From the NCBI GenBank assembly GCA_051294905.1, contig CM119381.1:24986001-25050000 (forward strand): a stretch of DNA of 64,000 nt, in the 5' to 3' direction. Below are positions 996-38,904 of this stretch, in pieces (position 1 is the stretch's first letter; each line of letters begins with the position of its first letter). Under the pieces are notes generated by a model. That model was given only the letters and a program-made list of their open reading frames with translations, searched no databases and was not told the DNA's origin. Origin of the DNA: Botryllus schlosseri (taxonomy: Eukaryota). The translations under genes were made by a program, and so were the position numbers.

Positions 996-1102
996 CGTCA
1001 CAAAATTCGGACAGTCTGATCCTTGTCCTGTTATCGAAACAGGTAAAGAATTCGTCACTGTCCGCACAATATCGTTCATCTGACGCATCGGAGCAATCGA
1101 TC
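996..1102 (-). CDS. Gene A exon (IDCSDASDERYCADSDEFFTCFDNRTRIRLSEFCD)
   Basis: ttggtag|G...GACG|gtgcgt; 107 nt, same length and phase as gene B exon 29871-29977. The ORF track shows a different frame here. Confidence 0.85.
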
Positions 1103-4100
1103 CTACCAAACAGTCATGCGTCAAAGGACAATCCGCAAAATGAATGGAAGTCGCAGAAAGACAGATAATTTGCTTTGGGCACAAATACTAGCGAAACTGA
1201 TATTTTCAAGATGATCGCGAATTGTGAAAATAGCATTGATAGATTTATAGAGAGGTCCCATATCTTCGGTGAATACATAGGCTATTATGGTAAGTTACAA
1301 TGAGCTAGTACATAGTTGTGCGTTCGCCTCTAGTATTTCCTGTGGCTACAACAGCTAGGTACTATTCATAATTCTAAATAGTCTCAGTAACAACACTTGC
1401 TATTATGCGTTTTCTCGGTTACGTCATTTTAGTGCTACGTGAAATCACAGCCAATAGTATAGATTCGGAGCCTTCAGATCTAATGCAAATGTAGGTTACG
1501 CATATTCTAATTATTTCTGTCTTGTCGTAGAAGTTGGGGAAACCCTTCAATTAATTTATGAGGTCAATAATCCGATTTCGTATTCATTTCCCTTGACCCG
1601 GAGGAAAGTGCCTTGATTTGTATCAACTCGTTGATTGCGTCGCAGTTGACTCCCGGACCATACTTTGGACACCCTGCTCTGTAATCATTTACTTGTAATC
1701 GCATATGTATGAACTAGGTAGGCAAACTTTTGTGTCCGACGATGTCTCGGGTAAGTTGCACATGATCTGTCCCGGGCATTCACAGTCGACTCCTGGAAAT
1801 AAAGTAGCAAAGTCATAAAATCATGAAAATTATGATAGGAGTTCACAGATTATTTGGCACTCTATGGCGGCATCGGAAACTGAGAGTGCATTGCAGTAAA
1901 CCTGTCTACCGTGTTTTGCCATAATGAGTGCCGTCAAGTCCATTGCGTATTTCAGAAACTCGATCATTCACAAGCCATAAGTCAGTGGCTCCTTAACCGG
2001 TTTAGCCGAGATCCAAAATCTTGTCAGTTGAAAATGTCGCATCACAATATGATGACGTCATAATCACAGACAAACGTCGAAGCTTCCTTGCTGTTAACGA
2101 TAAGCCTACTGCTTTAGTTAACGGTGGAATATAGTGCAGATATCGATACTAAGAATACATAAGATCTGAAAACATTAAACCCACTGGAGGTGAAATATTA
2201 AATTATATACGCGCTTGGTGATCATAACAATGTCCTTCTCTTCAAAATTTGGCAAGAATCAACAGAGCACCGGCAAGTCACGAAACTGAATGGCAAAAAT
2301 GTTTGACTTCATCATCTCTCATATATCAATTGCACTCCAGCGGCAATATGGACAGACAACTGAAACTCGGATCTAGCCTTCAAGACAAAAATGAAGCTGG
2401 TTCTAGCGAATAAACACTGTAGCCTGTATCTTAATGTCTTGTTGTCAAATAGATTTGGCGTAATTATCTCGCCCAAAAAAACCATACCGATTACCGATGC
2501 TCGTTACAACCACACGACATTCGACCTCGCAGAGAATTTCGCATGAGCTTGCTTTTTAGCAACACTGCACAGTTATGAACTGAGTGTTCATTTGAAATGT
2601 ATTATAGGTCCTTATCGAACGTTTGAATAGAAAAATAGTCCAATATTTAATGCATAATATGTATAATATGTATAATATATCATATAATGGAATAAGGTGT
2701 CTCGATCTGGAAATATATTGAGCATTATTGGAAATCGCTCACCATCACATACGGAGTCGCATATTGTAAGCCTTGTATAGCCCTTCTTCGCAGTGCAAAG
2801 GCACTCATCAGACAGATCGGCACAGTGAATTGTACCATCACATAATTGCTTTTGGGGAATAATCAGCGATCCGTCTAGGCACCGAAAGCACTTTGAATTT
2901 GAGAACGCTGGGAGACGATAATGTTTGTTTTTAAAAACTATACTGCTCTGCAACTGAAATTGTTTTGCTCACAGTTGGTGATGTATTGTCCTTCGCGGCC
3001 TTGTGCATTGAAATCACAAAAACACTCGTCCACGCCGTTGTCGCAGTTCGAAACCCCATCGCACACATGATGGTCCGGTAAGACACAATTGCGTGATTCG
3101 TGTTGTTGAGTGACGGGGCATTGGAAACCGATCGGCATTGATCTGAACGATTTCATACCGGCATATGAAATGATAATGGAGCAGGTGACAATATCAATAT
3201 AGGAAAGTGAATTCGAACGTGAATACAGATCTTTTCGAGTTGTATCCGAGGAATTCAGATAAAATGCATGAGGATTGTGGATAAGCTTACTCATGAACTA
3301 CCACCACCCCTTCTAACGAAAATATTGTATTTTACCATATTGTACGGTCAAGATCAAGTAAAAGTGCTTCCGGTGCGCATTTTGGCATGCATATCCAATT
3401 CAATGAGTGAAAACGAGTCAAATACCCCGATGTTATGGATATATATATATCCCAGGGGTGGTGTTCAATGTTCATGGGCTGTGTTTTCGTATACCACTCC
3501 AAAGAAGGCGCACAGCGGTGGTAGGCCTATACATAAACATTATCCACTGCAATTATGGGATGTATCTCCATAAGAATGGGTGTATTTGACACATCTTCAC
3601 GCACTGGAATGGGATTGAAATGAAAATTTGCTACCAGAAAGTGCTGGTGGACAGATTTGCATCATGCTGGAAATCTAGTAAATACGCCTATTTCCTACCC
3701 ACTGTACGTCTATATTCAAGCATTTATATCATCTCTACTTGCAGTATACTTGGATGATTTTTATTTAGTCTAAATTTAACTTCCACTCCCACTTGAACAG
3801 TTTTCACAGCTAAATTTGAATTTCAAATGGTGTAAATATGGATAAAGGAGTAAAAGCTGGATCGTTTTACGAAAACAATCGTCCAAAACGCCTCGCAGGT
3901 GGCATATAGTCTTGGTCTAGCTATGATCACAATCGAGTGGATAATAATGTCTTGTAACCATGCGATGCATATCTAAATGTCTGGAAATTTGAACCTGTTG
4001 TATAGGATTTCGTCCGATCCGTCTGGACAGTGTTCTTGGGAGTCGCAGAACGACGCCTTCACGGCACAAGACCCATCTAAACACTTAAAAGTGTGTCCAC

Positions 4101-7100
4101 AGTCGCATTCGTCAAGTCCTGTAAGAAAGTTCACCAGATTATTTAAGAATGAGTATTTCAGCTTTTGTTAGTATCTTCATTGAGACATCGAGCGAACTAT
4201 AACAACGTATACAGACTGTTATGGCCTATAAGGTTATACAAGACCGATGTCACGCATCCGGGTTAAGTGCGCACAAATGCATACATCGTATACTTGTGTG
4301 GTTTGACAGCCATTGTTAGTTGAGGGTCCCGTTTTGAGTACTTTTATGATTAGTCATAAATCGGCCAGGACAGGTTCAGCTGCGAGCCTGACGGTCTACA
4401 GTTTAGTGAGGCAGACCGCGCAGCCGTAAGTCAAAGAATTTTCAGCGAATGAAGCATATCTCTATTAAAACAATACGGAGACTATACGGCGGAGCGTGCA
4501 CGTGAATGGGGATTTGTCTCTATAATGACAAGAATCAGCACTGACTTCCGATAATTCAGCATAGACTAACGCAGTGGTTATCGGTCATTGGTACTTCGCG
4601 TATACCGGCAAAACTTGAAAAAATATATTGCGGACCGATGAACCTTCAAAAATCAACATCAACCCTAAATTTAATCTACGGTTACCATACGTCCTCTTTT
4701 GAGAGGATATGCCCTCTTTTTAGACTTTTTTGAAAGTATCCTCGGAGGACGCCAAATGTCCTCTTTTTTGAGATTTTGTCCACGTTTTTGAGAATATTGG
4801 TTAAAATAGAGTAAAATTCGAGTGAGACACAGTAAATCAGCACTGAAGTAACGCTTCGTCAGCTAATTCGGAAGCTGAATCGGAAAGTTGACCTATTTTT
4901 TAGTCAACCAACCACAAAGTCGGTGCAAATTTACCGTTTTTTCCGTATTTTACTCCAGAAGTGTAAGTCGGAAAATTTTGAAAAAGTGTCCTCTTTGCAC
5001 ATTTCCACAATATGGTAACCCTAAATTTAATCACGATAAATCTATGCAAGTCGAATGGATAAATTAATATTAAAAACTTCATTTAATGCTGCCTCTTTGA
5101 TATTGTAGTAGTATTGACGTTTCTGCGAGGCGAAGCTATCGAATTCCTGTTAGAGACCACTAACTTGATTGTAATTGCTTGGTATCCTTTGAAAGAAATT
5201 AGAATTGGCAGTTTGCTTTATATCAGGGGTTCCTATGGGTCGCGAATGGTGTAATTTAGGGTCGCGACACCATCAGAGAGATCTTTTAATATGTATCTAA
5301 TATTTGTTGAATTCCTCGCAACAACAAAAATTCCTTCACGCTTCGCGAGATTTCTGTAGGTAGTTTGTGCGTTTACGAGGATACTGTCTTGGATACTATA
5401 TATAGCCAATAGCAGGACACGTAAAAAGTCATTACTACAACATGGCTTGATCATAAAATATGCCGTTCTTTGGGTTACACAAATTGGTTTGAATTCACGA
5501 CAAGATTTATCCGACATGTGGTCGCTCACCATTAGGATGCTTTAGTCAGTTTAGTGTAGGGGTGTGCAACGATTGGGAGTGGAACTATGAGCCACAGGCC
5601 TTGCGAGGCCAATAAGTAGGCTATGTTTTCACGAAAGTATCAGTGAATATTATTTAGGTACCGGATTGCTTGATTCCGCTCACACCGCATTGTCGCTCAT
5701 ATCAAATATTTCATCGCATTAAATATGGCCCACCATAACATTTGAAACTACCATTTCGCAATCAAGCAATTACCTATCATATCGTAATCTAGCAGCCCAT
5801 GACCTGTCCTGCTAATCTGGAAAATCCGGCTTTTCTTAACGTTACACCTGTTTTAGCAAATCACCTTTGAAGCTTTATGGACGAAAGATATGAAATATAT
5901 TTTCCGCTTTTTAGAAGCGGTATTAATATTGCACTTTCAATTCCGAGTATCATACTATATGAGTTGTAATTACTTTCAGTTATCTGCAGAACATTCATGT
6001 TGAAGCATAAAAGCAAGTGTAGTAATTAGAGCCCGACCGATATGGGATTTCTGAGCCGATACCGATAAGACCGATATCCAGTACCTCCACCGATAACACC
6101 GATATATTCAGCCGATATTCAAAAGATATGGAATCTAGCTAAGGTCCATATTTAACACATCAGAGTATTTCTTTCAACAACTTTATACCGCCATTGATAT
6201 GATTGAACATGAAATAAATGATCCAGGAACTATAAAAATATATCAAAAGCACCAATCCAGCAATTGCAGATTACAGTTCACGAAGCACAAATTCTCGGAG
6301 TAAACTTCTGTGGTCTTCCATAGATGATGTATATAGTACTAAACACATTGAGCAGTCTTTCACTTGGTACCATAGTTAGTGGCACAGCAAGAATTGGAAA
6401 TCTTTCTTCATTTCGGTTCCACCGCTCCATTGCAGGGGATCTTTCCTTCAATGGTTTCACCATATATTGATATTATTATTGATATTCTTCAGGCAATGCA
6501 CCTGGAGCCTTCAGCAAATCATTAACAAATAGCTGAAGAGAATGTGCAAAACAACTCAAATTGTCCACGTCTGCAACTGCTCCACCCATTCCCCTTGGGC
6601 CTTGACCATGACCAGCATTTCAACAATCAACATTTTACGCTCTTTTGTCAGAATTGGCCAATGTCATCATGGAATCAAAATTTTTGGTATCAATTATTGG
6701 CTTTACTCCACGTTTGCTTGATTTTCTTGCCCTTTATGCTTGCATATTTCCTATCATGGTGGCCCCGCAGGCCTCAGTCAGACGACTTCATACATTACTG
6801 GAATAATTAGCTCTGTCTGTACCGAGCCGTGATATGTTTCGACGCGACGCTTTTCTCTATCATTACGAGGGTCAGTCCAGCATGATTGAAGTTCTCATTT
6901 CTCTTACTGATTGAAATCTTCTGCAGACAACTATCCATCCAGCTGCTCTCCGTCGTTGGTGATCGATTACTGCAGGGGGACTCCCACGAAGTCAGTGGGG
7001 CATAACGGTGGTTAGTTATCTATAATATTTTTCAGATAGGCGCGCCTACTGCCCTGTATGCAGTATGCACTATATGCAGCTTGGCGATTTATTTTTATAA

Positions 7101-10100
7101 TTTACCGCCCTCACGTCTTCTATTGACTTCTCTGACTCCCTGCCACCATGTTGTGACGTCACGAAAATGGCTGATATTTTTTTACCTTCAATGGCCGATA
7201 CCGATATTTCTCTCCGAGCGTGATATCGACTCGATATTATAGGCGAGCCGATAATCGGTCGGGCTCTAGTAGTAATGCCTCTATTTTCCGAAAATAAAGC
7301 TACATCAAATATAAATTTTACGAGCCACAATATTTGTTATTAAGGTATATTATAATCGCGCAATGTGTTGAAACCGTATCCAATACAACTTCTCCGTATT
7401 GCTCTTCGTCTATAAATTAGGGGCCCTATAATATGGGGTAGGGCGCAATGCCAAGATATTCTCTAAAACGGGGTCTTCTACTAAACAAAGGGTTAGTATC
7501 GCATTTTCATATCAATACTATAATTTGCATCCCATGATGCGAAAGAATGCTTATTCTGTCAAAAAATGATACCTCCTGGGATGGATCAATACGAATCAAG
7601 CTCTCTGCACCTTCCACATAGCTCAATTTGCAGCTTTTGACAGTCCATGCGAACGAATTAAGACTGTTTTCAAAACTACTTATGTTATGTTCTTGATCTT
7701 GTTTGAACAATAACTCATACGACGAGGTAGCAGTGATCAGTATATTATACAGCAGAATAGCTCCAAGGCAGCGACACGATCCAGAGTAGAGGTAAACGAA
7801 AAGACTACGAGACAACAGAACACAGGGTATAAATACAAGCACGACACACGGGGAAATAATGATTGGCTGTAATTACTAATCCTAGACAAATAAGAGATAA
7901 ACGATACCAACGTAAAATGCACGAACATAACAACTTACTTACTTAAGTAGATTTAAAGTAAGTCAATTCCACTTCTACTTCAAGTAGTTTTAGGTGGCCT
8001 ATGGAAGAAGTACTTCTATCCGTACTTGAGTAGCTTTCTTGACTACTTTGATCACCTCGGCATACACATGACCGTAAAAATGTAGCATAGCGATATTACA
8101 ATGCAAAGAATGCATACGTATTTATGCATGGGGCTTGGGTCGCGGACAATAAAATTTAGGAGCTGCTGCTCTATATACTGCCATGCGTCGCTTATAGGGT
8201 TGCATTTAAAACATACGGTGTTTTAAAACACTTTGTTTAAAACATGTTTTAAACCAGGGGTCGCCAACTCAAAACGGGTCGCGGGCCACTTTTCAAATTT
8301 CGTAGAGGCCGCGGGCCGCATGAATTCGATATCGATGTAAAATAGGCAACCACGTTCTAATACTCTACGTCAGTACAACGGTGAGCTATCTAACATAGGC
8401 GATGGGCATATTTGACCACAAAAGAAATAATATTTCAATAAAGGAATACAAATACAACAAAAAATCATTATCACCAATTATATCTTATTTTGAACTGTGA
8501 GCTGCGCACGGTACCTGGAAACGCTTTTCAGCGACTAAGGAATCGATATCGGGACTAGCGAGATACGTTACTAACTTAAAGACCATCTCCACGTAAAGCA
8601 TGATCTTGTGGGGAAGCCGTAAGTCGGTGGTTCTCAAACTTTTTTAGACACCCTCCCCTTTATGATACTGAAAAATCGTCATATCACAAAATGCAACCAG
8701 AATGCTAGAAATCCCAACAGCTAGTTTGATGGCATGGGTGGTTATGGCTGTTGATATGAATTCCGGACTATACACATAGCACTAACTATGAAATAGAGGT
8801 AAATCGCGCCGAGCGCGAAAATTTTTTCATTTTAGCGCATCTCCACCTCCCCTTCAGATGCTTTCGCGCCCCCACAAGGGGCGCGCGCTCCCCAGTTTGG
8901 GAACCACTGCCCTAAGCCGTTTTCTATGCGTCTCGGTCTTGGCAGTGTTTGGGCCATTGCAAGGCAAGACAATATGCCCATTGCCCATTCATATCAGCTG
9001 ATTCTCCCTCGATGGAATGCTGTTGCCATCACCACAGCCGTTTTAGCTATAATGACGTATAGTGATGTTGGGCACAAGAGAATAGCTTATTTTGAAACAA
9101 CAACAACATGTTGAAACTAAAGTTAATTTCAGCATTTCAGATTGGTTTTCCTAGCTTTCTTCCTAAATCTCAAATCAGATCGCGGGCCGCAGAATATGAC
9201 TTGGCGGGCCGCGTGTTGGTGACCCCTGTTTTAAACAGTGTCTTAAGGCCTTTAAAAAAATTGTGTTTTTTTAGTTGTAAAATTATGCCATAATTGTGTA
9301 AATACTTTCCAAAAGACATGTTGCATGAGCCTACGGTAAGGTTACCATATCTCTGTGACCCAAATTCCGGACACTCTTTGGCGCCCACTATAGTGGATTT
9401 CAAAATGAGTTATGAGCACATTGTCTGCCAATATGACGTCACACTACAAAAGCTTTGCTTATTGACCAGAGGAGGTCACGAACCAGGTTCAGGAGTATGT
9501 GGCTGTGTGTTGTGTAACCGGGACCGAAACTACATTTTTTTCAGCCCCCTTCCGCCCAAATATACAATGATTTTGAGCCCACCATCGGGTAATCGATGCA
9601 ACTTCAGGGGGCTTGCTATAAGCATCTGGTCGTTAGATTTTTTGAATGAATTCTGTCAATTATATATTGGTTCTTCCATATTACTAAATAGTTTGAACCT
9701 CTCTCCGCCACATGATCAGAGTTAGCGATAGAGCTGGAGGATAATGACTTCGAAAATACGGGGAGTGAAATTGTACATCATTAAGTCATGTTCATTTCAC
9801 ACCGATAATATTGTTTATCAGCCCTATGCCAGTGCGCACCACGGAGCTTAATAAAACCCCACATCCATTGGTTTCCCCAAATTTTTGACGAGTCTGCGCA
9901 CACTCACCAACTCACTGCGCGGTCCCTTGAACCACAGAGCGTTACTACTAGAAAAAAAGGTTATCACTTCGTGTCAGCACTGCGCAATTGCTCACGTGCG
10001 CAGCTTACAGGGAACATTACCGCGGCCCAGATCAAAATTTGACGCGCTGATTACTGAAAGAAGTCTGCACCTTGGCCCAGACTTAGTCACGGGCTATTTT

Positions 10101-12806: not shown

Positions 12807-12977
12807 CTAAAAATAGAAAACACAAGATGAGATGAAGATGAAGGAAAAATTTCTGCGAAATTTCAAATCCGCCTGAGAATATTTATTTTTGGATAATTTC
12901 GGAATCAGGAATCAGGGCCATTTTGTGAGATAAAAATATATTTCGCTTATATTTCGCAACCTAAATACATAGAGTGT

Positions 12978-13256
12978 CGAGATAGCGTGGTGTAGCGTAG
13001 CGGATAGTCCATATCAGCAACACTAATGGGTTGCGGGTTCGAGTCCGACCGAGATCGACTCTACAATTCCTACCTAAGTGTTGGAGGTTTATCTATGCTC
13101 CTCCTCGCCATCTCATCCGTTCAAACGGTATGTTACAAAAGCCTAGAAGCGGGCCGTGCTACAAGTCGCCAGCTACGGAATAAGAATGAAGAAAATTGGC
13201 CTGGTGTGAATGACCATAGTAGTCGACAAACCCCATGAATACCATAAACAACAACA
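12978..13256 (+). mobile_element. tRNA-derived SINE, near full length
   Basis: A-box-like tagcgtagcgg, B box GGTTCGAGTCC at 13036-13046, body matches 12317-12584, AAAC tail. Confidence 0.85.
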
Positions 13257-13671
13257 CGTGTAACTGTGTATCTGAGAAGCTAGCGTTGGGTCAATCCTAG
13301 AAATTATCATATATGTCAGCGATATATGACTGGGTGCCTCATGTGTCTTTTTATTGAGAACCAATATTGCAACGAAAAAGAAATGTATTAAATGTCTATG
13401 TACAAAAATTGTATGAACTAAGCCATTAATCGACTGCTGTAAGCTTCCTCAAGGGCAGGTTGCTGCAATAGCAGAACTCAATTCTACTTAAATATTGAAT
13501 ATCATTGATTGCACAAAATCGCCTCATCATTGAATCCTTCGGAACCATCTCAATTTACAGAATTATATCATTTATTAAGTTTGGTAGAAACCCACCTGTC
13601 CTAACGCACTGTATACTTTCTGGCCGACTCTTACTTTTGCCAAAACTTGCCAGACACGTCCGCGTAAAAAG

Positions 13672-17890: not shown

Positions 17891-17954
17891 GGCGACGCCG
17901 AACAGTCTCACGCCCGCAGGCTGCACATGCACATCCACGGATTAAATCATCCAA

Positions 17955-25100: not shown

Positions 25101-28100
25101 TTGAAGTAGAAGTAGAATTGACTGACTTTAAGTTTACTCAAGTAAGTAAGTAGTTGTGAAAACGATCGTATTTCGTTCGCAAGGACTGGCAAAAGCTGCA
25201 AATGGAGCTATGAGGATGGTGTAGATAGCTAAATTCATATTGATGCATCCCAGGAGATGTCAATTTATGACAGAATAAGCAGTCATCCACATCATGGGAT
25301 GTAAATGATAGTATTGATATGGAAATGCGATACTAATCCTTTGTTTACTCGAACACCCCGTTTTAGAGAATATCATGGCATGGCGCCCGTCCTCATATTA
25401 TAAGCAGATGTGGTCAAAGAAGCCAAGAAAGCTACTCAAGCAGAAGTAGAAGTAGCGACGAAAAAATCTACTCAATTGCGAGTAGAAGTACTTTTTCCCA
25501 TCTGAAACTACTTGAAGTAGAAGTAGAATTGACTGACTTCAAATCTATTCAAGTAAGTAAGTAGTTTTGAAAACAGTCTTAATTCGTTCGCTTGGGCTGT
25601 CAAAAGATGCAAATTGAGCTATGCTGATAGTACGGAAAGATTGATTCGTATTGATGCATCCCAGGAGGTATCAATTTTCGACAGAATAAGCATTCTTTCG
25701 CATCATGGGATGCAAATTATAGTATTGATATGAAAATGCGATACTAACCCTTTATTTACCAGAAGACCCCGTTTTAGAGAATATCATGGCATGGCGCCCT
25801 ACCCCATGTTACAAGGCCCCAAGTTCAGGCGAAGAGCTATACGGTGAAGTTGGATCGGAGGCGATTAGTATACGTTAATAACAAATATTGTAGATCGTAA
25901 AATTTACATTTGATGTAGCTTTATTTTCGGAAAATAAAGGCATTACTACACTTTCTGTTATGCTTCAGCATGTATGTTCTGCAGACAAAAGAACTGAAAG
26001 TAATTAGAACTAGGAACTGAAGGTGAAATACAAATACCACTTCTAAAAAGCTGAAAATATATTTAATGTCTTTTGTCCATAAAGCTTCAAATGTGATCGG
26101 CTAAAACAGGTGTAACGTTCAAAAATGCAGGATTTTCCGGATTAGCTAGACACGTCATGGGCTGCTAGATTACGATATGATATGTAATTGCTATTTGCGA
26201 AACGGTAGTTTCAAACGTTATAGGGGACCATACTTTCAGTGATGAAATATTTGATATAGGCGACAATGCGGAGAGAACGGAACCACGCAACCTGGTATTT
26301 AAATTATATTCAGCGATACTTCGTTAAAACATATTTGTCACCCCACATGGATTGTGCGCAAAGCGCAACGAAAATTCTGGGTATTACATGACTTTTATGA
26401 AAATAAAATGTTGGTATACTACGTGAAAACAGTCCCGAAATTCCTTAGGCTATCTTTCTTATTGGGGGATTAAACTATTTCTACTTGGAAAACTGAAAAT
26501 AGCGAAGAGTAAGTAAGTAGTTCACAAAATATTTTGAAGTAGAAGTTGCGAAAAAAGAAGATCTACTTGATTAAATACCAGAAGTAGAGGAAAACTAATT
26601 GAGTACTTCGAAAAAGTAGAATTACTTCGTTACTGACCACCTCTGCAATACAGAACACATATGAAATGTTCCAAGAGTCTCGAACCGTTTCCCATAGCGG
26701 TAAAGAATCGGCTTGTACATAATCTTCGAATGAAAGAGATCCGCGAAGATCGGCAACGAGAAACACTGGAAATTTGACTGTCACTAAAATGTTAAGCGCA
26801 GTCTGGATGGGATAGAAGTTATTGTCAAACAGCAACATTACAAGCGTTAATTTGATCAATATGACATGGTGTCTCGAGAGAATGAAGTGATTAATTACGC
26901 TTTGCCTAATCGGCGATAACAATTACAGCACGAAAGACTGTGATTAGATCCTTTACAGCTTATCATATTTTGCTGTGATAGGCACGGATGAATGTAATTG
27001 CTCCCATACATTTCAATGTGATGGACAATGCATAGTGAAAAGCGGATTTTGTGATGGAGCTCCGAATTGCGACGATCGATCGGATGAGAGGCAGTATCAC
27101 AGGTATAAGGAATTATTTTGAACTCGATAGAGCGGAACATCTCGGTCTTGGTGTACGTTCAATTGAATAGCTGAGTGATAACTGGAATTGAATACGAGTT
27201 TCAACTATGTACAATGTACATAGCCAAGTTCAAATGTTTTACGAATATGTCCAGAATCGGTTACGTCAATTGTGTGAAGACATTACCTGTTACAGGAAAG
27301 AAATAACCCTAAAGAAATTCTACTCGGGTGCGCGCAAATGTACTGCATGTCGAAAATACTTTGTCATGGTGACCTGCAAGGCACACGTATATTGGAACGC
27401 GTTTGTGTAGTGGTCACCTAAAAGAATTGCAGTTACCACGAACACCTGATGCGTGTGTTCGGGTTTGCGACACCGTAGTGAGCGCGCAGCGAATAGTGTC
27501 AAAATAGTTCGATAATAGGTGCATGCCTGAGTGAATAATATCCAGTCAAAAGACGCATACTTACAGTATTTTGAGGAATTTCGAAATTCGAAAGTTCGAA
27601 AGTTTCGATTCGAAACTTTCAATTCGAAAGTTGATATCAATTTACACAGAACAAGCGACGCCGGTTTTCAATGTCCGGTTACGAAGTTGCGGGAGACCAA
27701 TGTATGCGTGCTACCCGACCAGTACGTTTGTGACGGTTACCCTGACTGTGATCACGGAATAGATGAGTGCTTTTGTGATTTCACCTCGGGACAATCTCAC
27801 GGTCGATACGACAGAGAATGTGAGTAATCCATTGATTAGAAGGTACGCTTCATTATAATTACGTCAACACATGACCACTTGACCAGACTTCGACAACTAA
27901 TTCTAGTTGTATAATTAGACTAGTTAGAGCAAAATGTCAGTCACTGCATTCTAATCTAATTTGAAAAATGTTTCATTGCTATAATTCTAATTCCATTCTA
28001 TTTTGTGAAATGTTTCTATGGTCTATAGTTTGAATTCCAATTTAATTTCCGTTTTTTCTGAAAATATAACGGCAGAACGGCATAGTGCGAAACGAGTTAA

Positions 28101-31100
28101 GCTTATACTGTATATGGATTTGTCAATCTCGTACTTATGTGAATGAACTCTAATTGGAAACGGACTGAACTTTTCAAGTTTGCGCGAATTCAAAATTCTA
28201 ATCTTATCTGTAAAAGCTAAAAATCGTATAATTGTCCAGCTCTGCACATGACATATCCAATCATGTAACGGCCAGACGCCCAGACCGTACATATAAATGA
28301 CATAGGCCATACATATAAATGATACGCGACGTATGTGCCGCATTTCAGCACGCTCCAACGGCGAATGCTTCCGATGCGAGGATGACTCCCTGATCATACC
28401 GAAGAGACAGCAATGTGACGGCGTGGTGCACTGTACAGACCTCTCGGACGAATGTTCGATAGAATGTGACAAAAAGAAGGATCACGAATTGCCGGGAGTG
28501 TGTAATTCTCGCTGTACAGGTGTACTGATATTAATAACATCCTATCCCACAAAAAGAGCATTTCTTTAATTTTATCGTGTACAAATACATTTCCCTAAGA
28601 TGAATTTGATTGAAACAGGAGTTATAATACTCTTATTTGATATAGGCATCGAGTGTAATTGTACGGGGAACTTGGTTTGCGCCCCGCCCGGTCACAACAC
28701 CAAGGAGAGATGCCTCAAAGAAACGTCAATTTGTGACAGGAGGTAGGAACAGAATTCGGGTACTATAAACCAGTAGGCTAGTCCCCAACGATTTTGGAGT
28801 CACGGATTCCTGTCAGATAATTTTCCAACTTACGATTTACGAATCCCTAAATTTTCAATATAGTGACCAATACCAATATTACTTTCCCAAAACTACGCAT
28901 TCATAAATAGCCTACTATATAGTCCACGTTGAAAACAATATTGCCATGACGAATTTGACAAGAAAATTTTTCAATTGCAAAATGCAGTCCGAGAACACAA
29001 TCCCTTACGAAGTCTGATGGTGGTGTATTTTATATATGCTCCTCATAGCCATCCGATTCGCCTATACGGTGTCTTAACAAAAGCCCGACGGAAATGGGCT
29101 GTGGTATAAGCTCCAGAATCATCAATACGAACAACAGCTCGGCGGACAACAACCATAGATGGCGGAACACCGTGAATATTTTATGAAATAGCAATGATGT
29201 AACATGCAAGCCAATAATATAGAGAAGCCCGTTTGTTCGTTTGTTGGTGACAGTGCATTGTGTATTGGTACATGCAACATGGGGCGAACAAATAGCACTT
29301 AGCGTTACACAGTCGATCCGCAGTATAGAAAAATATCTGAGACTTGAGACCTATATCTGTCCTAACCAGGGTTGTAACCAAGTCGCAAGGTTCCGAGTCA
29401 CAAGTCATTATGTTCACTGTTCAGTTTTCAGTTCAATCTGGTTCAACTCACTTTTTTCAACTCATGTTGAATGATTTAATGACTCGCATTCAAAATATAA
29501 TAATTTTCCTCAGTCGTAACAGTTTCTGATCTTACTTTCCAACTACCAGGATTGATAGACGAAGTAGCAATAATGGGTAACTTTGCTATTCTTCGAAGTT
29601 ACAATGAAGTGTCTGTCTTGGCCGTCCTAGTCTCGAGTCATACGACTTGGTTCGAGTCACGCACAATGACTCGAGTACAAGTCGAGTCAATCCAATAATT
29701 GACTCGAGTCGAGTCGAGTCATTTTACGCATTTGAAAAAATGACTCGAGTCATTACAACCCTGGTCCTAAAGCAATTGCTCACCAACTTTAGGTGGTTTA
29801 TACTTGGCCGATGTAGCAAAATTAGTATATGGTTTTAGCGTATCACTTGCGCATGTACTTTCGGTTTCAGGTTTGATTGCGCAAATGGGTGGGACGAGAA
29901 TTTTTGTCCAAACGAGGAACAGTTCTTCAAGTGCTATGACAAGAAATTAATTATTCAAAAAACACTGCTATGCGACGGTACGCTTCCCCGATATAGGAAT
30001 GTATAGATTAGTTATCTATGTAGAGGCACACGCCCGTTTCTTTCCATCAGGTATTCCCGACTGTGAAGACAGCTCGGACGAACTGAACTGCGGAAGCCTT
30101 ACCGATTTCATTTGCAATACGTACAGAGTGTTCTTCCCGCATATTACCGGTAACTTTATCAGTATTCGTTGAGTGGTATAAGAAATTAGTCTGTGGTTCC
30201 GGAAGTCCTGTCGAATTGAAAAATAGCGTAGTTTCAGGTACAAGCTGTATGTGTACTGTACATTGCTGTGCAGTGCTGATAAATAGTCTAAGAAAAAATA
30301 TAAACATCACTATCTATATATTCCCAATTGTAATATCATATCGTTCTATTTCTCGGATAGCTCTGCACCGGGGTAACGAACCTTTTTGCAACCACGAGCT
30401 ACTTCTTGGGTACTGATTGAAGCGACGGGCTACCATTTACTAATTGTAATTGAGGATATTTGATATCATTATTTCAAGGGTATATATATTATGTGTGTAT
30501 GTAGGCTATTGTCATTTGTAAGCTGAGGTGGTCAGTAACGAAGTACTTCTACTTTTTGGAAGTACTCAAGTAGTTTTCCTCTACTTATGGTACTTACTCA
30601 AATAGATCTGATTTTCGCTACATCTACTTTTACTTCGTAATATTTTGTGAACTACTTACTTACTTTTCGCTATTTTCAGTTTGTCAAGTAGAAGTAGTTT
30701 AATCCCCCAGTAAGAAAGATAGCCTGAGGAATTTCGGGGATGTTTTCACGGAGTACCAACATTTATTATTCATAAAAGTCAAGTAAAGCCCAGAAATTTT
30801 GTTGCGCTTCGCGCACAGTAGTTATCGAGTGACAGATATGTTTTCACGAAAGTATCGGTGAATATAATTGAGGTAGCGGATTGATTGGTTCCGCTCACAC
30901 CGCATTGTCGCCCATATCGAATATTTCATCACAGTACATATGGCCCAACATAACGTTTGAAACTACCGTTTGGCAATCTAGCAATTACCTATCATATCGT
31001 AATCTAACAGCCCATTACGTGTCTTGTTAATCTGGAAACTCCAGCTTTGTTGAACGTTTCACCTGTTGTAGAAGATCAGTTTTGAAGCTTTATGGACAAA

Positions 31101-34100
31101 AGGCATGAAATATGTTTTCCACTTTTTAAAAGTGGTATTTGTACACTTTCAATGGCGAGTATCATACTTTGAGTTCAAATTACTTTCAATTCTTTTGTCT
31201 GCAGAACATACAAATTGAAGCATAAAAGCAAGTGTAGTAATGCCTCTATTTTACGACAATGAAGCTACACTAGATATAACTTTTACGATCCACAATATTT
31301 GTTATGAACATATACTAATCGCGCAAAAAGATGAAACCGTATCTGATGCAACTTCTACGTACTGCTCTTCGCCTAACCTTAAGGCCTTATGATATGGGGT
31401 AGGGCGCCATGTCACGATATTCTCTAAAACGGGGTCTTCTCGTAAACAAAGCGTTTGTATCCCATGTTCATATCAATACTATACTTTACATCTCATGCTG
31501 AGAGCAAATGCTTATTCTGTCGAACATTGATACCTCCTGGGATGCATCAATACGAATCAAGCTCTCTGTACCTTCCGCATAGCTCAATTCGCAGGTTTTG
31601 ACAGTCCATGCGAACGAATTAAGACTGTTTTTAAAACTACTTACTTACTTGAGTAGATTTAAAGTCTGTCAATTCTACTTCAACTTCGAGTAGTTTTAGG
31701 TGGCTTATTGAAGAAGTACTTCTACCTGCACTTGAGTGGATTTTGTCGTCGCTACTTCGACTTCTACTTGAGTAGCTTTCTTGACTACTTTGACCACCTC
31801 TGTTTGTAAGTAACATGTTAGTGTGATTTAAACAAGAATAGCTATATCAATCAATCTATATATTTAAAAGTTCATTGTAATAATCTGACGAATATTGGTA
31901 AATCTAGGGATGGTGTGAACCTCTGAAAGGTTCAGGTTCGTGTGAACGCGAACCTTTTTGAAAGGTTCTGTGTGAACACGAACGTGAACCTCATGACGTC
32001 ACGTGACGTCATATTGCTAATTCCAACCCTATCTTTCAATGAAGTGATAGCCTATATTAATATACACAATACCTAGCGACGACTCGGGCCACATCATTCC
32101 ACAATGCCGAAGTACATGTTGGCGTTTTAAACGTCGCTAAATGTATCAACTGAGGCAATCAAAGGATATGATACTCCTATAAAATCAATATCTTCCGTCG
32201 CTTTGCCAACAATTTTGATGAGGACTTCCGGGGAATATAAGCTTACGCCTTAACGGTCTGGGCCAGACCGTACAATGTATTCGGCGTCTGAGTATCGCTA
32301 CATTGATATTAAGCTAAGTGTAAAACGGGTTTCTACACTTGTTACCGATATTACCCCATTGTCAAGTTTTACTGCAGTATCCAACACCTCAATCGCAAGG
32401 ATTTGGTTTTAATGATGCAGTAAAGATATGAAGTCAAGATTGACCCCGTACGCCTGCTTGATTTTTTTGCATCAGAAAACGATATCAATATCATCGATTG
32501 GTTGAATAAACATCATTCGCTGACTATATATTTCGCTCGTGACGTTGTGTGATTGCGGGTCTAACTCACAGCAGAGAGTCACTAAATATTCATAAACGGA
32601 AAGCTGGATATTTCGAGCAAACTTTTGTAACAAAGCAAGTAAAACTTTTGAGATTGTCCAGGTGCATGCTCGTTTAGTGTTGATTTTTAATGCTGCCAGC
32701 GCCATGCATAGAGTGGCCCGCAGTGGAAATGCAATAATTTTCAACCAAAGATGTTATAATGAAGTGAAAATTGTAATAAATGAAAAAGGTTCACAGTGCA
32801 GAACCTACCAAGGTTCTGTTGTGAACGCGAACCTCTAAATTTCCGAGGTTCACACACAAAACGCGAACGTGAACCTCACGTTCACACCATCCCTAGTAAA
32901 TACTGCCATTCGATCTATTTTCAGAACCGGCTCGCGGGATACTCATCTGGTCCTCGCGGACTACCTGGGGCCCGCGGGCACCGTATTGGTGACCCCTGCT
33001 CTGGACAATGTTCTGTCAATATGATTACTATGACTAAACTCTTTATCTCTTTATATAGATTGGGACAACAACACGCAGACTGCTTCTGTTCATCCACCTC
33101 CTGGGAGAAGTAAATATATTTCCATTTATATTGTTTAGTCTTTTTGACTAACACATTCTTAACTCAAAGTATGCGTATTAGCACGGGTGTACATTAACAC
33201 CCGTATATCACGGTGATACAAGGGCGTGAATGCTTACTTTTTTCTATAAGAGTGTACTTGTTTGCTTGAATTGGGTAGATGTCTTAGCTCATGGGTACGA
33301 ATACCACCAATTTATCAAACCTTGTATAGGTGCCCTAAGTATTTTGTAACGATGATAATTGCAGACCGTGGCGCGCCAGTACTTGATTTTTGATAAGTGC
33401 CGCTAGACTTCTACAATACTAACAATAACAATTGTCATCAGTTTTTATATGTCATCAGTAGGGCGATTTTTTTGAACTAAAAAAGGAAGTTTTGACCTAA
33501 AAAATAAAAATTGTGACCTTTTTTTACCTTTAAAAACTTAATTTCGACCAAATTTAACCTAACGTATGCAAACTAGGTGTTTTCCCACACAATGATAGAA
33601 TTGCACTACTTATCTACATTTTTTTGGAGCTATCTGACCTTACGAGGTAGTTTGGCCTGAAAACACTTTTTGCCTCGAAAACTGACAAATTTATTACATG
33701 AAAAAACTTTATTTTAACGAAATCTGTCCCTATGAAGAATTCCAGTAGTTACATCACGTATTATGTTAGAAATAATTAATATTTGTTGTAGCACAACGAA
33801 ATATACTTTCCTACGTTCTTGGGTAAAAAGTGTATCTCCTTAATAAGTAGCTTGCCAACAATGGAGAAAGAAAGTTCAACAGCAGCAGTCGTTGGCTGAC
33901 AACACTGAAGTTGTGCGTGCGTACACTTCTGGTGACATACCGTGTTGCTTCATTCTGACAATGGTGTCTACATCACAATTGTTCATCATGCGCTTTTAGA
34001 TGTAAGAACCATGCAATGCCCACGTAATCTTACTTCAGATAGGATATTGCGGTACGCTGAGCAAACACCAAATTAACCTATTTGTTCCACAATGAGCAGA

Positions 34101-37100
34101 CAATGGGCCGTTTACAACGGTAGGCCTATAAAGTAGGCTACAAGCTGTAAAATGTCGAATGATAAGTTCAACCGACAGCAAAATCTACGATACAAGCGAA
34201 ATGCGGGTTGCAAAAAAATCCGACTCTGTAAACAATTTTGACATTTTTTTTTAACTTGACGCTACAATTGTAACACAATTTTGAACTTTTTTGACATGTA
34301 AAAAAAAATCGCCCTAGTCATCAGTATATGTATCTGGATAGTGTATGCGTATTTAATTTCAAATTTCATTACCCTAATCGTCAGGAGTCTCCAAAGATTA
34401 TCCACTCCGTGCAGTTCAATGTGATGGAATCCCAACGTGCGGAGGACTTGGTGACGAATGTTCAGCTTCACGTTGTGCTGAATCACAGCCAGAATTTTGT
34501 AAATTCCAAACCCGTGAGGGTAAAGGTTTTAGGTAAACTTCTTTTCTTGTAGGTAGATTTTGATAAAACGAACATTCACTATAGCACGAACCAGCAAAGA
34601 CCGAGTTACTGTTTGGTTTGCGATTGGTGGTAATTCGCTGATCCATGTAGGATAATGACCTCGTTTGAGATTCTCCCCTATATACTGGCTCACAACCTTT
34701 TTTCCTACCGTGCACTATGAGGTTCTATGATTTTGTTGCATACCAACAAATTGACGAAAAACTCAACCTTACTCCAATTATATATACGGTTATTAACATG
34801 GGCCGATTAGCAAATAAGTCGGCATCGAAATTTCGAAACAAATGCGACCCACGAGCTAATCACCCTCGATTGCTAATAACACAAAATTAAAAATTTGGTT
34901 GCAATTATTTCTTGTCCAAGAGCTGATCTAGGCGGGGTGCAACTGATTGGAATGATGCAAAAAGTACTTAACTGTGCTTTCGATGCTTATACCGTATGAC
35001 TGTACTAACAATTCTTCCCATACTTCATTTGTAAACGTCTTCAGTCCCACACATCGATTTGAAAATGTTATTTTTGTTTCTCGCAGGTGTAAGAACTCTG
35101 CAACAATATTGATAGGACGCGAAGTTTGCGATGGAGTTCCGACGTGCGACAAATTCCATTCCGAATTATCCGTCGACGAGCTTTTCTGCCCAAACAGGTA
35201 GTGCTAACACTATGTCATTTTATCGTTTACAGATTGGTACAGCGAAAACAACTCATTATTACCTGACACAATATACCCAATCCCCCTCGGTATAATATAC
35301 TTCTTGTATTCACAGATTTTACTGCGCGGATCGAGGTGCCAACCGATTGCCTATTCACATTCCACAGTCCGGCCGTTGTGACTGGATTCAGGTGATATTC
35401 ATATCAGCTCGTACGACAAGATTTTGTTACGAAGAATCTGTATGTGTGCGATAGTCCCAATGCGTGGTCCTAAAACAAAATTGTATTCTTTTTTCTCGTC
35501 ACTTTGGTACTACGAAGGCAATCTCAGTATCACAATGCCAAGCTTGATCACAATGCAAATTTCGAGACTTGTTTAGGGGGTTTCCTGGGCCATGAGCAGT
35601 ATAAAATTCATGTTTTCGTAATCAGTACAGCAGCAGCTTTCCATTGATACCCGTTTTATCGAATTTAGCGCGCGGCAAGCCGGTCAAAAATGGCCGTAAA
35701 GTTGCCTTTGGTCAAAGGGAAAGTATGACATATAACCCAAATGCAGTGAGCCATTCAGTCTCTCTGTGTCCACGCCATAGAGGACACTATGGTCCAACTA
35801 TACACTCGCCGAGGTGTTTTTTTGGTCTCTGTTTACGGTCTTGAACAGAAGTCTTGGTTCTGAGTAGATGTGGTCAAAGTAGTCAAGCAAGCTACTCAAG
35901 TAGAAGTAGAAGTAGCGACGAAAAAATCTGCTCAAGTACGAGTGGAAGTACTTTTCCATAAGCCACCTAAAACCGCCTGAAGTAGAAGTAGAAGTAATTG
36001 ACTTAAATCTACTCAAGTAAGTGCGTAGTTTTGAAAACAGCCTTAATTCGCTCCGCATGGACTGTCAACAGCTGAAAATTGAGCTATGCGGAAGATGCAG
36101 AGAGCTTGATTCGTATTGATGCATCCCAGGAGGTATCAATTTTCGACAGCATAAGCGTTATTTGGCATCATGAGATGCAAATTTTAGTATTGATATGAAA
36201 ATGGGATGCTAACGCCTTGTTTACTAGAAGATCCCGTTTTAGAGAATATCATGGTATGGCGCCCTACCACATATTATAAGGCCCCAAGTTTTGCCGAAGA
36301 GCAACTCGGATACGGTTTCAACACTTTGCGTGACTAGTATACGTTAATAACAGATATTGTGGATCGTAAAATTTATCTTTAGTGTAGCTTTATTTCCGGA
36401 AAATAGAGGCATTACTACACTTGCTTTTGCAACATGGATGTTCTGCAGACAAAGGAACTGGAAGTAATTAGAACTCAATGTATAATACTCGTAATTGAAA
36501 GAGAAATAAAAATACCACTTCTAAAAAGCGGAAAATATATTTCATGTCTTTTGTCCATAACGCTTCAAGGGTGATCTGCTAAAACTGGTGTATCATTCAA
36601 AAAGCAGGATTTTCCAGATTGGCAGGACAGGTCATGGGCTGCTAGATTACGAAATGAAAGGTATTTGCTAATTGCGAAACGGTAGGTTCAAACGTTATTG
36701 TGAGCCATAGTAACTGTGATGAAATATTTGATAAGGTGTGACAATGTGGTGTGAGCGGAACCAAGCAATCCGGTACCTAAATTATATTCACCGATACTGT
36801 CGCGAATACATATTTGTCACTCCATAACTACCGTGCAAGAAGCGCAACGAAATTTCTTGGCTTTTTCGACTTTTATGAATATTAAATGTTGGTACTCCGT
36901 GAAAACATACCCGAAATTCCTCAGGATATCTTTCGTATTGGGGGATTAAACTACTTCTACTTGACAAACTGAAAATAGCGATAAGTAAGTACGTAGATCA
37001 CAAAATATTGCGAAGTAGAAGTAGAGAAAATCAGATCTACTTGAATAAGTACCAGAAGTAGAGGAAAACTACTTGAGTACTTCCGAAAAGTAGAAGTACT

Positions 37101-38325
37101 TCGTTACTGACCACCTCTGATTCTGACTCCTGACAATCACTGCTTCCGATGGAATATTACAAGTTTCACACATAATCTTACTTGAGTATCATCAACGGCT
37201 GTCTTCTCTGCTCAAAGTCTCCCGCACGAGCGAATGTGAAATATTGTCACAAAGTACTAGCCGGATTCTGTCGACATCGATCTCTAATTATTATGTATTC
37301 ATTCAATTCTTTGTCATGACTGCGCCTAGAAAGTGAAACAGTGACGAAATGTGTGCCTGGGGTTTAAGAAAGACGATGACGCGTCACCTAAATATCACAG
37401 ATATCGCGGGAATGGAGTTATATCTTCCGCGAAAATCTTTTAGCAGCAGTTCGTATAGCGGGAGGGAAATGGCTACTGCCAAAATGTTTTTCACACGTCC
37501 AACTTGACTTTGAGGCCACGTCGTATTTAGAGCGCAGTGATAGTGCACTGACAGCCGCGATTGCATTCGGTAGTCGGCATCGGTAAATTGCAAGGGAGGC
37601 TTGCATTTGTTTGTCAAACTAACATTATTTATTCATTACTTCCGCAGGACTGCGCAGACATGAGTGACGAAATGGGTTGTTCAAATGGCACCCATTTCTA
37701 CTGTCGAAGAGGTACGCGCAGGACTTTCATAAAAGCCAACGAGGTGGGAAAATACCGATAGATATGGCATCAAGATTGTTACAACACTCACCATGATAGT
37801 ATGCGCGCCATGTGGCTGAATTAACATGTTCGTGTTTTCTCTTGTTATTTTTGTGGAGGCTGTCAAGTTATTCGAGAAGCTTCTCTCAAACCCAAAAAGT
37901 ACGAGTGTCCGTGAAATGTTTCGTGAGGCAATCTCTACCTCAACCTGTAGCATTGACGCTTCGGCGCGCGAAGCATCTGAAAATGATTTATCAACGATAT
38001 CATTACATTGGTTGCTTATTTTTGGGCGTATAGGTTTGTGACGGCATCAACGATTGCGATTCTGGTCTGGACGAATCTCAAAATTGCAGCACGACCTATA
38101 AATCTGCATGCAAGCGTCTGACACACAGCTTGACAGTTTGGAGTGTAATGTTATTAATTGTCGGTGAGATATAGTTCGATCGTAGCAACTATATAAAATA
38201 GCCAAACTTACCTAGAATCTTGATCAGCGATACCAGAGAGTCGATATCCAACGCCTCAGTACGAGAACCATCCAACCGACCGCATCTTCCAACTTTTCTC
38301 CGCAGGTTTTAGTGACGCTAATTAG
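19006..38325 (+). CDS. Gene B: multi-exon protein with about 11 LDLa-like modules and a C-terminal hydrophobic tail; 5' end unresolved
   Basis: Exons 19006-19111, 23912-24057, 26982-27102, 27650-27819, 28349-28519, 28646-28742, 29871-29977, 30051-30149, 34385-~34519, ~34557-34629, 35087-35197, 35316-35391, 37648-37743, 38034-38163, 38306-38325 chain in frame with AG/GT ends. Modules are reconstituted across junctions (LCP|DGSDE, DCIG|GTDEC, CDR|RFDC, CDWIQ|DCADMSDE, ANE|VCDGINDC). Confidence 0.85.
19194..20661 (+). mobile_element. Family F MITE interrupted by the fold-back element
   Basis: TIRs caggggcggccaacc/ggttggccacgccca; colinear with 58391-59058, which shows the empty site; TSD ctctatac/ttctatac (left copy 4 nt from the TIR). 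Confidence 0.85.
19606..20223. mobile_element. 618-bp almost fully palindromic (fold-back) MITE
   Basis: Arms of about 300 bp from tagggctgttcaaaaataac to gttatttttgaacagcccta, centre about 19905-19925; perfect TSD CTGTGCAT. Confidence 0.93.
21324..23110 (+). pseudogene. Decayed P-element (THAP9-like) transposase with N-terminal THAP zinc finger
   Basis: VNKCCVYGC...W...WEPT..SVICVLHF (C2CH THAP), LMVDEMYLQK, DDIHLVKNIRNNLL, KQNVNLA, FQSGPIEKRFSQYREMSGG are P-superfamily motifs. Probable start codon reads AAG; several frameshifts and deletions. Lies in the gene B intron 19112-23911. Confidence 0.88.
23912..24057 (+). CDS. Gene B exon (DGSDEFKYNASLESERGIECQVIRNPPSKRSCHLPHRYVCDKELDCIG)
   Basis: ctatttcag| ... 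G|gtatca; phase 2-1. Confidence 0.88.
24119..24955. mobile_element. CAGGGGTGGG-type MITE (GGGCCGCA repeats)
   Basis: Ends ...ggggaaactat/atagttttcccacccctg; TSD caatagag/cagtagag. Confidence 0.75.
25024..26645 (+). mobile_element. Family A element with a doubled 5' end (second 5' TIR at 25405)
   Basis: TIR cagaggtggtca/tgaccacctctg; perfect TSD CAATACAG. Confidence 0.92.
26982..27102 (+). CDS. Gene B exon (GTDECNCSHTFQCDGQCIVKSGFCDGAPNCDDRSDERQYH)
   Basis: gtgatag| ... AG|gtataa; phase 1-2. Confidence 0.88.
27650..27819 (+). CDS. Gene B exon (TSDAGFQCPVTKLRETNVCVLPDQYVCDGYPDCDHGIDECFCDF...)
   Basis: tttacacag| ... T|gtgagt; phase 2-1. Confidence 0.9.
28349..28519 (+). CDS. Gene B exon (SRSNGECFRCEDDSLIIPKRQQCDGVVHCTDLSDECSIEC...CT)
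   Basis: catttcag| ... G|gtgtac; phase 1-1. Confidence 0.88.
28646..28742 (+). CDS. Gene B exon (GIECNCTGNLVCAPPGHNTKERCLKETSICDR)
   Basis: ttgatatag| ... AG|gtagga; phase 1-2. Confidence 0.85.
29367..29763. mobile_element. MITE with TIR cagggttgtaa/ttacaaccctg and CGAGT repeats
   Basis: TSD gtcctaac/gtcctaaa. Confidence 0.85.
29871..29977 (+). CDS. Gene B exon (FDCANGWDENFCPNEEQFFKCYDKKLIIQKTLLCD)
   Basis: ggtttcag| ... G|gtacgc; phase 2-1, 107 nt. Confidence 0.88.
30051..30149 (+). CDS. Gene B exon (GIPDCEDSSDELNCGSLTDFICNTYRVFFPHIT)
   Basis: tttccatcag| ... G|gtaact; completes CDG-IPDCEDSSDE; 3' boundary less certain. Confidence 0.8.
30523..31802 (-). mobile_element. Family A element, full length, inverted relative to 25024-26645
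   Basis: Perfect TSD TTTGTAAG. Confidence 0.92.
31905..32895 (+). mobile_element. Family B MITE, second copy
   Basis: Same TIRs and body as 13672-14646; TSD gtaaat(a)c degenerate. Confidence 0.9.
33059..33109 (+). CDS. Candidate optional exon of gene B (DWDNNTQTASVHPPPGR)
   Basis: ctctttatatag| ... A|gtaaat; symmetric phase 1-1, 51 nt, open; no domain support. Confidence 0.3.
33459..34316. mobile_element. hAT-type MITE (TIR tagggcgattttt/aaaaatcgcccta)
   Basis: Perfect TSD GTCATCAG. Confidence 0.88.
34385..34519 (+). CDS. Gene B exon (GVSKDYPLRAVQCDGIPTCGGLGDECSASRCAESQPEF...)
   Basis: aatcgtcag| phase 1; CDGIPTC...DEC motif; three alternative phase-1 donors (34498, 34513, 34519). Confidence 0.7.
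34557..34629 (+). CDS. Probable gene B linker exon (FDKTNIHYSTNQQRPSYCLVCDW)
   Basis: The only open phase 1-2 segment I found bridging to 35087; donor TG|gtaatt; the upstream intron is plausible (58 nt) only with the 34498 donor. Confidence 0.45.
35087..35197 (+). CDS. Gene B exon (CKNSATILIGREVCDGVPTCDKFHSELSVDELFCPN)
   Basis: tttctcgcag| ... AG|gtagtg; phase 2-2. Confidence 0.85.
35316..35391 (+). CDS. Gene B exon (FYCADRGANRLPIHIPQSGRCDWIQ)
   Basis: tattcacag| ... CAG|gtgata; phase 2-0. Confidence 0.82.
35865..37119 (+). mobile_element. Family A element, full length
   Basis: Colinear with the other copies; TSD gttctgag/attctgac. Confidence 0.9.
37648..37743 (+). CDS. Gene B exon (DCADMSDEMGCSNGTHFYCRRGTRRTFIKANE)
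   Basis: acttccgcag| ... GAG|gtggga; phase 0-0. Confidence 0.88.
38034..38163 (+). CDS. Gene B exon (VCDGINDCDSGLDESQNCSTTYKSACKRLTHSLTVWSVMLLIV)
   Basis: cgtatag| ... G|gtgaga; last LDLa module followed by a hydrophobic stretch. Confidence 0.85.
38306..38325 (+). CDS. Candidate terminal coding exon of gene B (GFSDAN*)
   Basis: Strong acceptor ccaacttttctccgcag; phase-1 reading stops after 6 codons (phase 0 would give VLVTLISG*). Confidence 0.5.
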
Positions 38326-38903: not shown

Positions 38904-38904
38904 C

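Follow-up and report, generated by a model that had tools for sequence, protein, structure and literature searches.

We describe two genes, here called A (minus strand) and B (plus strand), that diverge from a common spacer in a 64,000-nucleotide window of the Botryllus schlosseri genome (C11:24986001-25050000, contig CM119381.1; the assembly has 495.5 Mb in 219 contigs). Their sequences place both genes in the ascidian-specific LDLRR-GPCR family, a family that has already been described. Gene A, as its model predicts, is a complete receptor and a new member of this family. Our preferred explanation, which we consider probable, is that A is a full LDLRR-GPCR and that B is an old, constrained and transcribed derivative consisting of the ectodomain only, possibly a secreted or tethered decoy. 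The window has a GC content of ~40% and zero N. Flanks of 200 kb were added, giving 264 kb that were examined, and a Styela protein was mapped onto this sequence to place the genes. All positions are in window coordinates, with negative values to the left of its start.

The kinship of the two genes is revealed by their exons. Comparison of stop-free segments from a six-frame translation, the minus strand at 1-13 kb with the plus strand at 19-30 kb, gave seven collinear matches between A and B, with blastp E values of 1e-5 to 1e-23 and identities of 34-57%. Exon bounds were established by direct reading of the sequence and by a homologue-guided search for splice sites and phases, resulting in the following pairs:

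Exon 2: A 12698-12806 (minus) and B 19006-19111 (plus), 109 and 106 nt; first LDLa-like module in A
Exon 3: A 11940-12082 (minus) and B 23912-24057 (plus), 143 and 146 nt; peptide CHLPHRYMCDHETDCIGG in A and CHLPHRYVCDKELDCIGG in B
Exon 4: A 3995-4118 (minus) and B 26982-27102 (plus), 124 and 121 nt; LDLa above the Pfam cut-off
Exon 5: A 2973-3142 (minus) and B 27650-27819 (plus), 170 and 170 nt; GFQCPVT...DECFCDF module
Exon 6: A 2743-2907 (minus) and B 28349-28519 (plus), 165 and 171 nt
Exon 7: A 1693-1792 (minus) and B 28646-28742 (plus), 100 and 97 nt
Exon 8: A 996-1102 (minus) and B 29871-29977 (plus), 107 and 107 nt; last A exon in the window

A preliminary description of this DNA had proposed these seven pairs with the same lengths and identical phases. 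They matched to the base, far beyond chance, and the Cys/Asp peptides it had quoted are present in the translated exons. The introns of A and B are all GT-AG, with the phase series 2,1,2,1,1,2,1 in both genes. To the left of the window, A has six further exons whose counterparts in B are exons 9-14, up to position 38163, for a total of 13 pairs (E2-E14). The head-to-head arrangement around a spacer of about 6 kb, also proposed earlier, agrees with the distance between the innermost matched exons:

12807-19005: spacer between the innermost confirmed homologous exons, 6.2 kb
15116-18791: spacer as measured from start codon to start codon (both predicted), 3.7 kb

The assignment of the modules to LDLa by Pfam held for one exon per gene: with a cut-off of 24.1 bits for PF00057 (Ldl_recept_a), exon 4 scored 26.0 bits in A and 27.7 in B. 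Five more exons of A and B gave sub-threshold matches, and a tandem LDLa arrangement was found in both genes. Each has 60 cysteines, across ~11 modules. The exon-5 module scored 17.4 bits in B and 14.3 bits in A, below the cut-off and over profile positions 11-37 only; in its alignment the cysteines are invariant and a D.DEC cluster is present. An AlphaFold prediction of this module from 13 sequences had a mean confidence score (pLDDT) of 53, too poor for a fold search.

The model of gene A comprises 21 coding exons with an uninterrupted open reading frame (ORF) of 945 amino acids. Thirteen of these exons lie beyond the window, 0.7-17 kb left of its start, and they include every exon of the seven-transmembrane (7TM) domain: six (99, 145, 111, 76, 96 and 127 nt) are the counterparts of B exons 9-14, and seven code for the 7TM domain. 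Two A exons outside the pairs listed above were placed as follows:

15052-15115, minus: A exon 1 (predicted), with start codon and signal peptide; chosen for the best ATG, a hydrophobic stretch and a phase-1 donor (CAG/GTAACT)
-738 to -836, minus: A exon 9, homologous to B exon 9

The A protein has seven hydrophobic helices with the CWxP and NPxxY motifs. Its seven 7TM exons match a hidden Markov model (HMM) of the family's 7TM domain, with E values of 1e-9 to 1e-35, as well as the Styela protein P0002 (36-62% identity). Taken alone, the exon for transmembrane helices (TM) 2-3 gave weak matches only, to FSHR, LHCGR, TSHR and RXFP1 (E 0.03-0.2), and a PDB search with the exon for the second extracellular loop and TM5 returned no match. 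In A, and also in the neighbouring family member Z, the last LDLa module shares its exon with a 20-residue stalk and the beginning of TM1.

With the 170-nt exon of B as query, an exhaustive HMMER search retrieved tunicate proteins of 890-1009 amino acids that have Ldl_recept_a repeats followed by 7tm_1, with no match to a leucine-rich repeat (LRR) family at E<0.001. Named relatives are LOC120326605 and LOC120326832 of Styela clava and LOC100183011 of Ciona intestinalis, of which LOC120326605 and LOC100183011 are the nearest. Ldl_recept_a scored 83-108 bits on the homologues P0002, P0008 and P0042, and the solved structure nearest to the 7TM domain of P0002 is RXFP1 (7tmw, E 1e-25), followed by FSHR, LHCGR, TSHR and LGR4. 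The Ciona LDLRR-GPCRs are a lineage-specific expansion with 1-10 LDLa repeats, no LRRs and TM regions like those of the INSL3/relaxin receptors (Kamesh, Aradhyam & Manoj 2008, PMC2396169). Blood cells were the source of most of their expressed sequence tags, and the receptors are orphans (PMC2396169). The lineage-specific family suspected in the preliminary description is thus that of the ascidian LDLRR-GPCRs (PMC2396169).

Gene B follows the plan of A up to TM1. Its coding sequence has 1656 nt in 15 exons, with all introns GT-AG and an intact ORF of 551 amino acids, including the predicted signal-peptide exon. In addition to exons 2-8, it consists of:

18792-18849, plus: exon 1 (predicted), signal peptide ending in KSQ, phase 1; the sole candidate passing the filters
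30051-30149, plus: exon 9, 99 nt
34385-34532, plus: exon 10, 148 nt; an RNA contig piece begins at 34385, and the donor was set by phase and homologue length
35087-35197, plus: exon 11, 111 nt; RNA junction 35197/35316
35316-35391, plus: exon 12, 76 nt; RNA junctions 35197/35316 and 35391/37648
37648-37743, plus: exon 13, 96 nt; RNA contig junctions, and raw reads on 37743/38034
38034-38163, plus: exon 14, 130 nt; last LDLa-like module, a diverged stalk and the first half of the former TM1
38306-38325, plus: terminal coding exon, 20 nt; adds FSDAN and the stop codon TAG (38323-38325), with the 3' untranslated region (UTR) reaching to at least 38456

The junction after exon 1 (...SQ-I-LPCNST) resembles that of Z (...SQIFPCNST) and of Styela P0002 (...SQIFPCNTT). 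Exon 14 ends at the same phase-1 intron position in TM1 as in A, Z and the Styela gene. If the intron after it is retained, a stop follows after three codons, and either isoform of B stops within a few codons of TM1. The end coordinate given in the preliminary description, 38325, is the end of the B stop codon.

Spliced RNA over the predicted junctions was found for part of gene B, where four junctions are present in RNA contigs. A 391-nt contig of run X1, with 0 mismatches, joins 35197/35316, 35391/37648 and 37743/38034, and in a second X1 contig one piece has its first base at 34385, precisely the predicted acceptor. A different study (run X3) supplied a contig with six mismatches that joins 38163/38306 (GT..AG) and continues unspliced to 38456. 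Two raw reads from a third study (X13) also span 37743/38034. As the region 38034-38660 is unique in the genome, the RNA contigs there derive from B. The differences between the X3 contig and the reference are 5/90 in the coding tail of exon 14 (38073-38162) and 1/152 in the next exon and 3' UTR; the mismatches in the tail could be high allelic diversity where B lost function.

We then looked for a 7TM domain in B. Using tblastn with four family 7TM domains, at E values up to 10, none was detected downstream of B, and the search of the species' own genome found no plus-strand 7TM exon near it. The family HMM was built from six 7TM domains and run with filters off on the six-frame translation of the 264 kb. 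It found nothing on the plus strand, including 156 kb downstream of B, and all 7TM exons of A and of the neighbouring genes Z, C, D and E. A minus-strand match at 56720-56938 (E 0.72) was disregarded. Since B has no 7TM domain and its ORF ends inside TM1, it is derived from the family but is not itself a GPCR; by descent, it is a GPCR ectodomain. Consequently, A and B are not the receptor pair that had been proposed: A has a relaxin-receptor-like 7TM domain outside the window and B has none, which leaves a receptor and a truncated ectodomain copy.

The C-terminus of B reads ..KSAC-KRLTHS-LTVWSVMLLIVGF-SDAN, in which possible small residues are followed by a spacer of 6 residues, a hydrophobic stretch of 13 and 4 polar residues. 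As a lead only, this tail may be a signal like that for a glycosylphosphatidylinositol (GPI) anchor. The Styela protein P0003 (541 amino acids, LDLa only) was considered as a B-type orthologue and rejected, being an outdated truncated model of a 1009-residue Styela protein. The Styela clava orthologue of Z has no inverted LDLa copy in its upstream 10 kb, which is too little sequence to judge whether Styela has a counterpart of B.

We next asked how old the copy is and whether it has been constrained. The exons of A and B have no similarity at the DNA level, and synonymous sites (dS) are saturated in all paralogue comparisons; therefore, the duplication is old. Nonsynonymous divergence (dN) is 0.44 between A and B, 0.36 between A and Z, and 0.33 between B and Z, with protein identities of 50, 57 and 59%, respectively. 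Because of the saturation, dN/dS by the NG86 and YN00 methods was unusable, and the rough LWL85 values are 0.14 for A-B and 0.19 for B-Z. Of the 59 cysteine columns common to A and Z, B retains 58, whereas outside the cysteines it retains only 72% of what the two have in common. The stalk motif NPSPFSSD is kept in A, Z, Styela and Ciona and lost in B, and identity over the stalk and TM1 segment is 30% for B-Z versus 63% for A-Z; the remaining exons are conserved in B to roughly the same degree as in A, or better. An early truncation, after which the LDLa array stayed under selection, would account for this pattern but is not proven by it. The purifying selection suggested earlier is supported by the intact ORFs, the dN values, the rough dN/dS of at most 0.2 and the retained cysteines.

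Our model suggests the following. The family plan is one of about eleven divergent LDLa modules joined directly, without LRRs, to a rhodopsin-class 7TM domain of the relaxin/glycoprotein-hormone-receptor (LGR) type. B is an inverted copy that kept the whole ectodomain exon for exon and lost everything beyond the TM1 intron, and the ancestral donor of that intron now splices to the 20-nt exon in unrelated sequence. The predicted product has a signal peptide, the LDLa array, a 13-residue hydrophobic tail and SDAN. It would be exported via the signal peptide and either secreted or weakly tethered to the membrane, through a GPI-like or short anchor. It may bind ligands of the class that its full-length relatives recognise and, producing no signal, serve as a decoy or modulator. 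A more specific version, which we put forward only tentatively, is that a stably maintained gene, B, encodes a decoy or co-receptor, free or lipid-tethered, that tunes the response of A or Z to a (lipo)protein ligand in ascidian blood cells. In that reading, B as a decoy would be the genomic counterpart of the LDLa-only splice variants of RXFP1.

Several observations weigh against our preferred explanation. B is weakly expressed, with RNA contigs at a depth of 3-10. Of two bulk RNA-seq runs, one yielded 2 junction reads among ~13 million reads sampled and the other none. Exon 1 of A and of B and the B junctions E1-E9 are predicted from the sequence, with RNA support starting further 3', and the support for a B product is at the sequence and RNA level. 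At 13 residues, the hydrophobic tail falls short of a usual membrane helix, and it is also atypical as a GPI signal. B has lost one cysteine (DEC, in the last module) together with the adjacent stalk motif, and its dN branch is 0.21 versus 0.12 for Z (~1.7x longer). The comparisons are among paralogues, with no B orthologue, so that selection before and after the truncation is inseparable.

The main rival explanation takes up several of these points. B could be a transcribed, functionless relic, a partial inverted duplicate that is drifting to a pseudogene. The absence of a 7TM domain, the low expression, the longer branch and the disappearance of both the DEC cysteine and the conserved stalk motif would all be expected of such a relic, and the truncation itself could be recent. 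However, the copy is old by its saturated dS, and yet the ORF is intact over 15 exons and the splice sites are canonical; the cysteines were kept, with a single loss, while 28% of the other shared residues changed. Moreover, the divergence is not even but concentrated in the segment without a partner. Thus, we regard the relic as unlikely. Far less probable still, and in our view very improbable, is that B codes for an ordinary full-length receptor and that its 7TM exons escaped detection owing to a very long intron, misassembly or divergence. Introns of this family reach 8 kb, and only 26 kb of the window lie downstream of B, but the window is free of N, the HMM is silent on the plus strand over the 156 kb downstream of B although it finds every 7TM exon of the five minus-strand genes, and RNA splices exon 14 to the 20-nt exon and runs unspliced for at least 130 nt beyond the stop.

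A separate question is whether A and B are the direct products of one inverted duplication, co-regulated by a bidirectional promoter. We find this rather doubtful. The genes are head-to-head, their predicted start codons lie 3.7 kb apart, and their exon structure and phases are identical; a forced A+B clade had a p value of 0.31 in the approximately unbiased (AU) test, neither supported nor rejected. On the other hand, A and B are the least similar of the three pairs, and exon 8 has 69% identity between B and Z versus 34% between A and B. The maximum-likelihood (ML) tree joins B with Z, weakly (51/23). Inclusion of P0026 and P0042, two distant Styela proteins, left the trees unresolved and with long branches, and the order of A, B and Z is weak even without them. 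Z is a slowly evolving, orthologue-like copy of Styela LOC120326605, and A and B sit on long branches. As the other cluster members and the Styela gene have the same exon plan, this plan is a family trait and no evidence for a private A-B duplication. The old inverted duplication of the preliminary description thus stands as regards its age, and a direct A-B pair is unsupported, B being nearer to Z.

How do these genes compare with known systems? Genes A, Z, C, D and E fit the Ciona LDLRR-GPCRs fully, with an N-terminal LDLa tandem, no LRR and a 7TM domain. B differs in being ectodomain only; the 2008 paper has 7TM members with a short N-terminus, not the converse (PMC2396169). Among the type C LGRs, RXFP1 and RXFP2, RXFP1 has the 7TM domain nearest to that of the LDLRR-GPCR family, but these receptors have one LDLa and about ten hormone-binding LRRs, whereas the genes described here have about eleven LDLa-like modules and lack LRRs. 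Truncated RXFP-type splice products (LGR7-truncate and others) keep the LDLa, lose the 7TM domain and inhibit the full receptor (PMC7196478). They are a functional analogy for B, which is a separate gene and not a splice variant. GRL101 and GRL101-like receptors of Lymnaea also have several LDLa modules before an LGR-type 7TM domain, but with LRRs between the two, whereas here exon 14 joins the last LDLa straight to TM1; no LRR ectodomain of the RXFP1/2 or GRL101 type was found in the A/B family. Finally, predicted B resembles LDL-receptor ectodomains and soluble or GPI-linked LDLa proteins in being an LDLa array without a signalling domain, and it has acidic CDG..DC.D.SDE clusters of the kind that typically goes with Ca2+-dependent ligand binding. 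Unlike the LDL-receptor family, it lacks an EGF/beta-propeller, an endocytic tail and a complete TM helix, and its modules are mostly atypical and sub-threshold for PF00057.

The surroundings of the two genes are a family cluster. Own-genome searches with two distinctive exons identified 8 and 7 loci, every one on C11, of which seven family loci lie between 24.94 and 25.26 Mb (within 0.32 Mb), plus one distant copy; the exon-5 type (GFQCPVT...DECFCDF) has 8 genomic copies. Among the members at C11 25.18-25.27 Mb and 6.51-6.57 Mb, three are known from exon matches alone. The genes placed in and around the window are:

-62.6 to -37.8 kb, minus: gene Z, placed by the mapped Styela protein
-16.9 to 15.1 kb, minus: gene A, placed by the mapped Styela protein
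18.8 to 38.3 kb, plus: gene B
68 to 90 kb, minus: gene C
121 to 149 kb, minus: gene D
from 176 kb, minus: gene E

B alone is on the plus strand. A and B are therefore two of at least eight family members, not a self-contained pair. The 26 kb from the end of B to the end of the window (38400-64000) have no recognisable family exon, and the ORFs tested there are without a Pfam match; gene C ends ~4.3 kb past the window end. Genome-wide, the central 7TM exon of this receptor type has >100 matches (C1 25-31.7 Mb, C16 20-21 Mb, C2 23-27 Mb), many of which carry in-frame stops. To judge from these matches, the numbers indicate a very large LGR-like/LDLRR expansion in which many copies would be pseudogenised.

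The introns of A and B had been described as entirely different in their transposable elements. This did not hold: they have the same repeat families at 78-88% DNA identity, at positions that are not demonstrably homologous. An interspersed repeat of ~1.2 kb has four copies (80-88%); among RNA contigs it is highly abundant, with depths that sum to thousands. A further repeat is shared between the genes:

5622-8060: ~1.2-kb repeat, in A
25023-26333, 30837-31800 and 35921-36812: ~1.2-kb repeat, in B
13672-14660 (A), matching 31905-32911 (B): second shared repeat

A third, SINE-sized family of ~230 bp occurs at 12363-12584, 13028-13252 and 38669-38904, in which ARAGORN and Rfam recognise nothing. 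This family and that of 13672-14660/31905-32911 are located in the A-B spacer or A intron 1, and around or inside B. No tRNA and no Rfam family was found across the window. Intron 2 of B contains, at 21276-23035 (plus), ORFs of 56, 246, 102 and 123 amino acids that resemble the remnant of a THAP/P-element-type transposase; the 246-residue ORF has a weak match to the Tnp_P_element helix-turn-helix (E 0.0016, below the cut-off). In addition, an X3 contig with the pieces 37212-37324, 37791-37976 and 38212 onwards has CT..AC ends, equivalent to GT-AG when read from the minus strand, and so points to a spliced antisense transcript with exons in the last B introns. No coding potential was recognised in it, and its ORF at 38224-38613 (minus) is without a Pfam match.

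The family itself is known; what is new is gene A as a member and gene B as an architectural variant, the pair being otherwise an ordinary part of a tandem family cluster. For annotation, genes of the "LDLa-array" kind in this genome need to be checked for 7TM exons tens of kb away before they are given an LDL-receptor label. The LDLRR-GPCRs are a large receptor family of the chordate lineage that has been orphan since 2008, and an expressed, ectodomain-only paralogue such as B would be a ready-made soluble bait for the ligands of the family. B may also serve as a test case for how a GPCR gene turns into a decoy through the loss of its 7TM domain at an intron.

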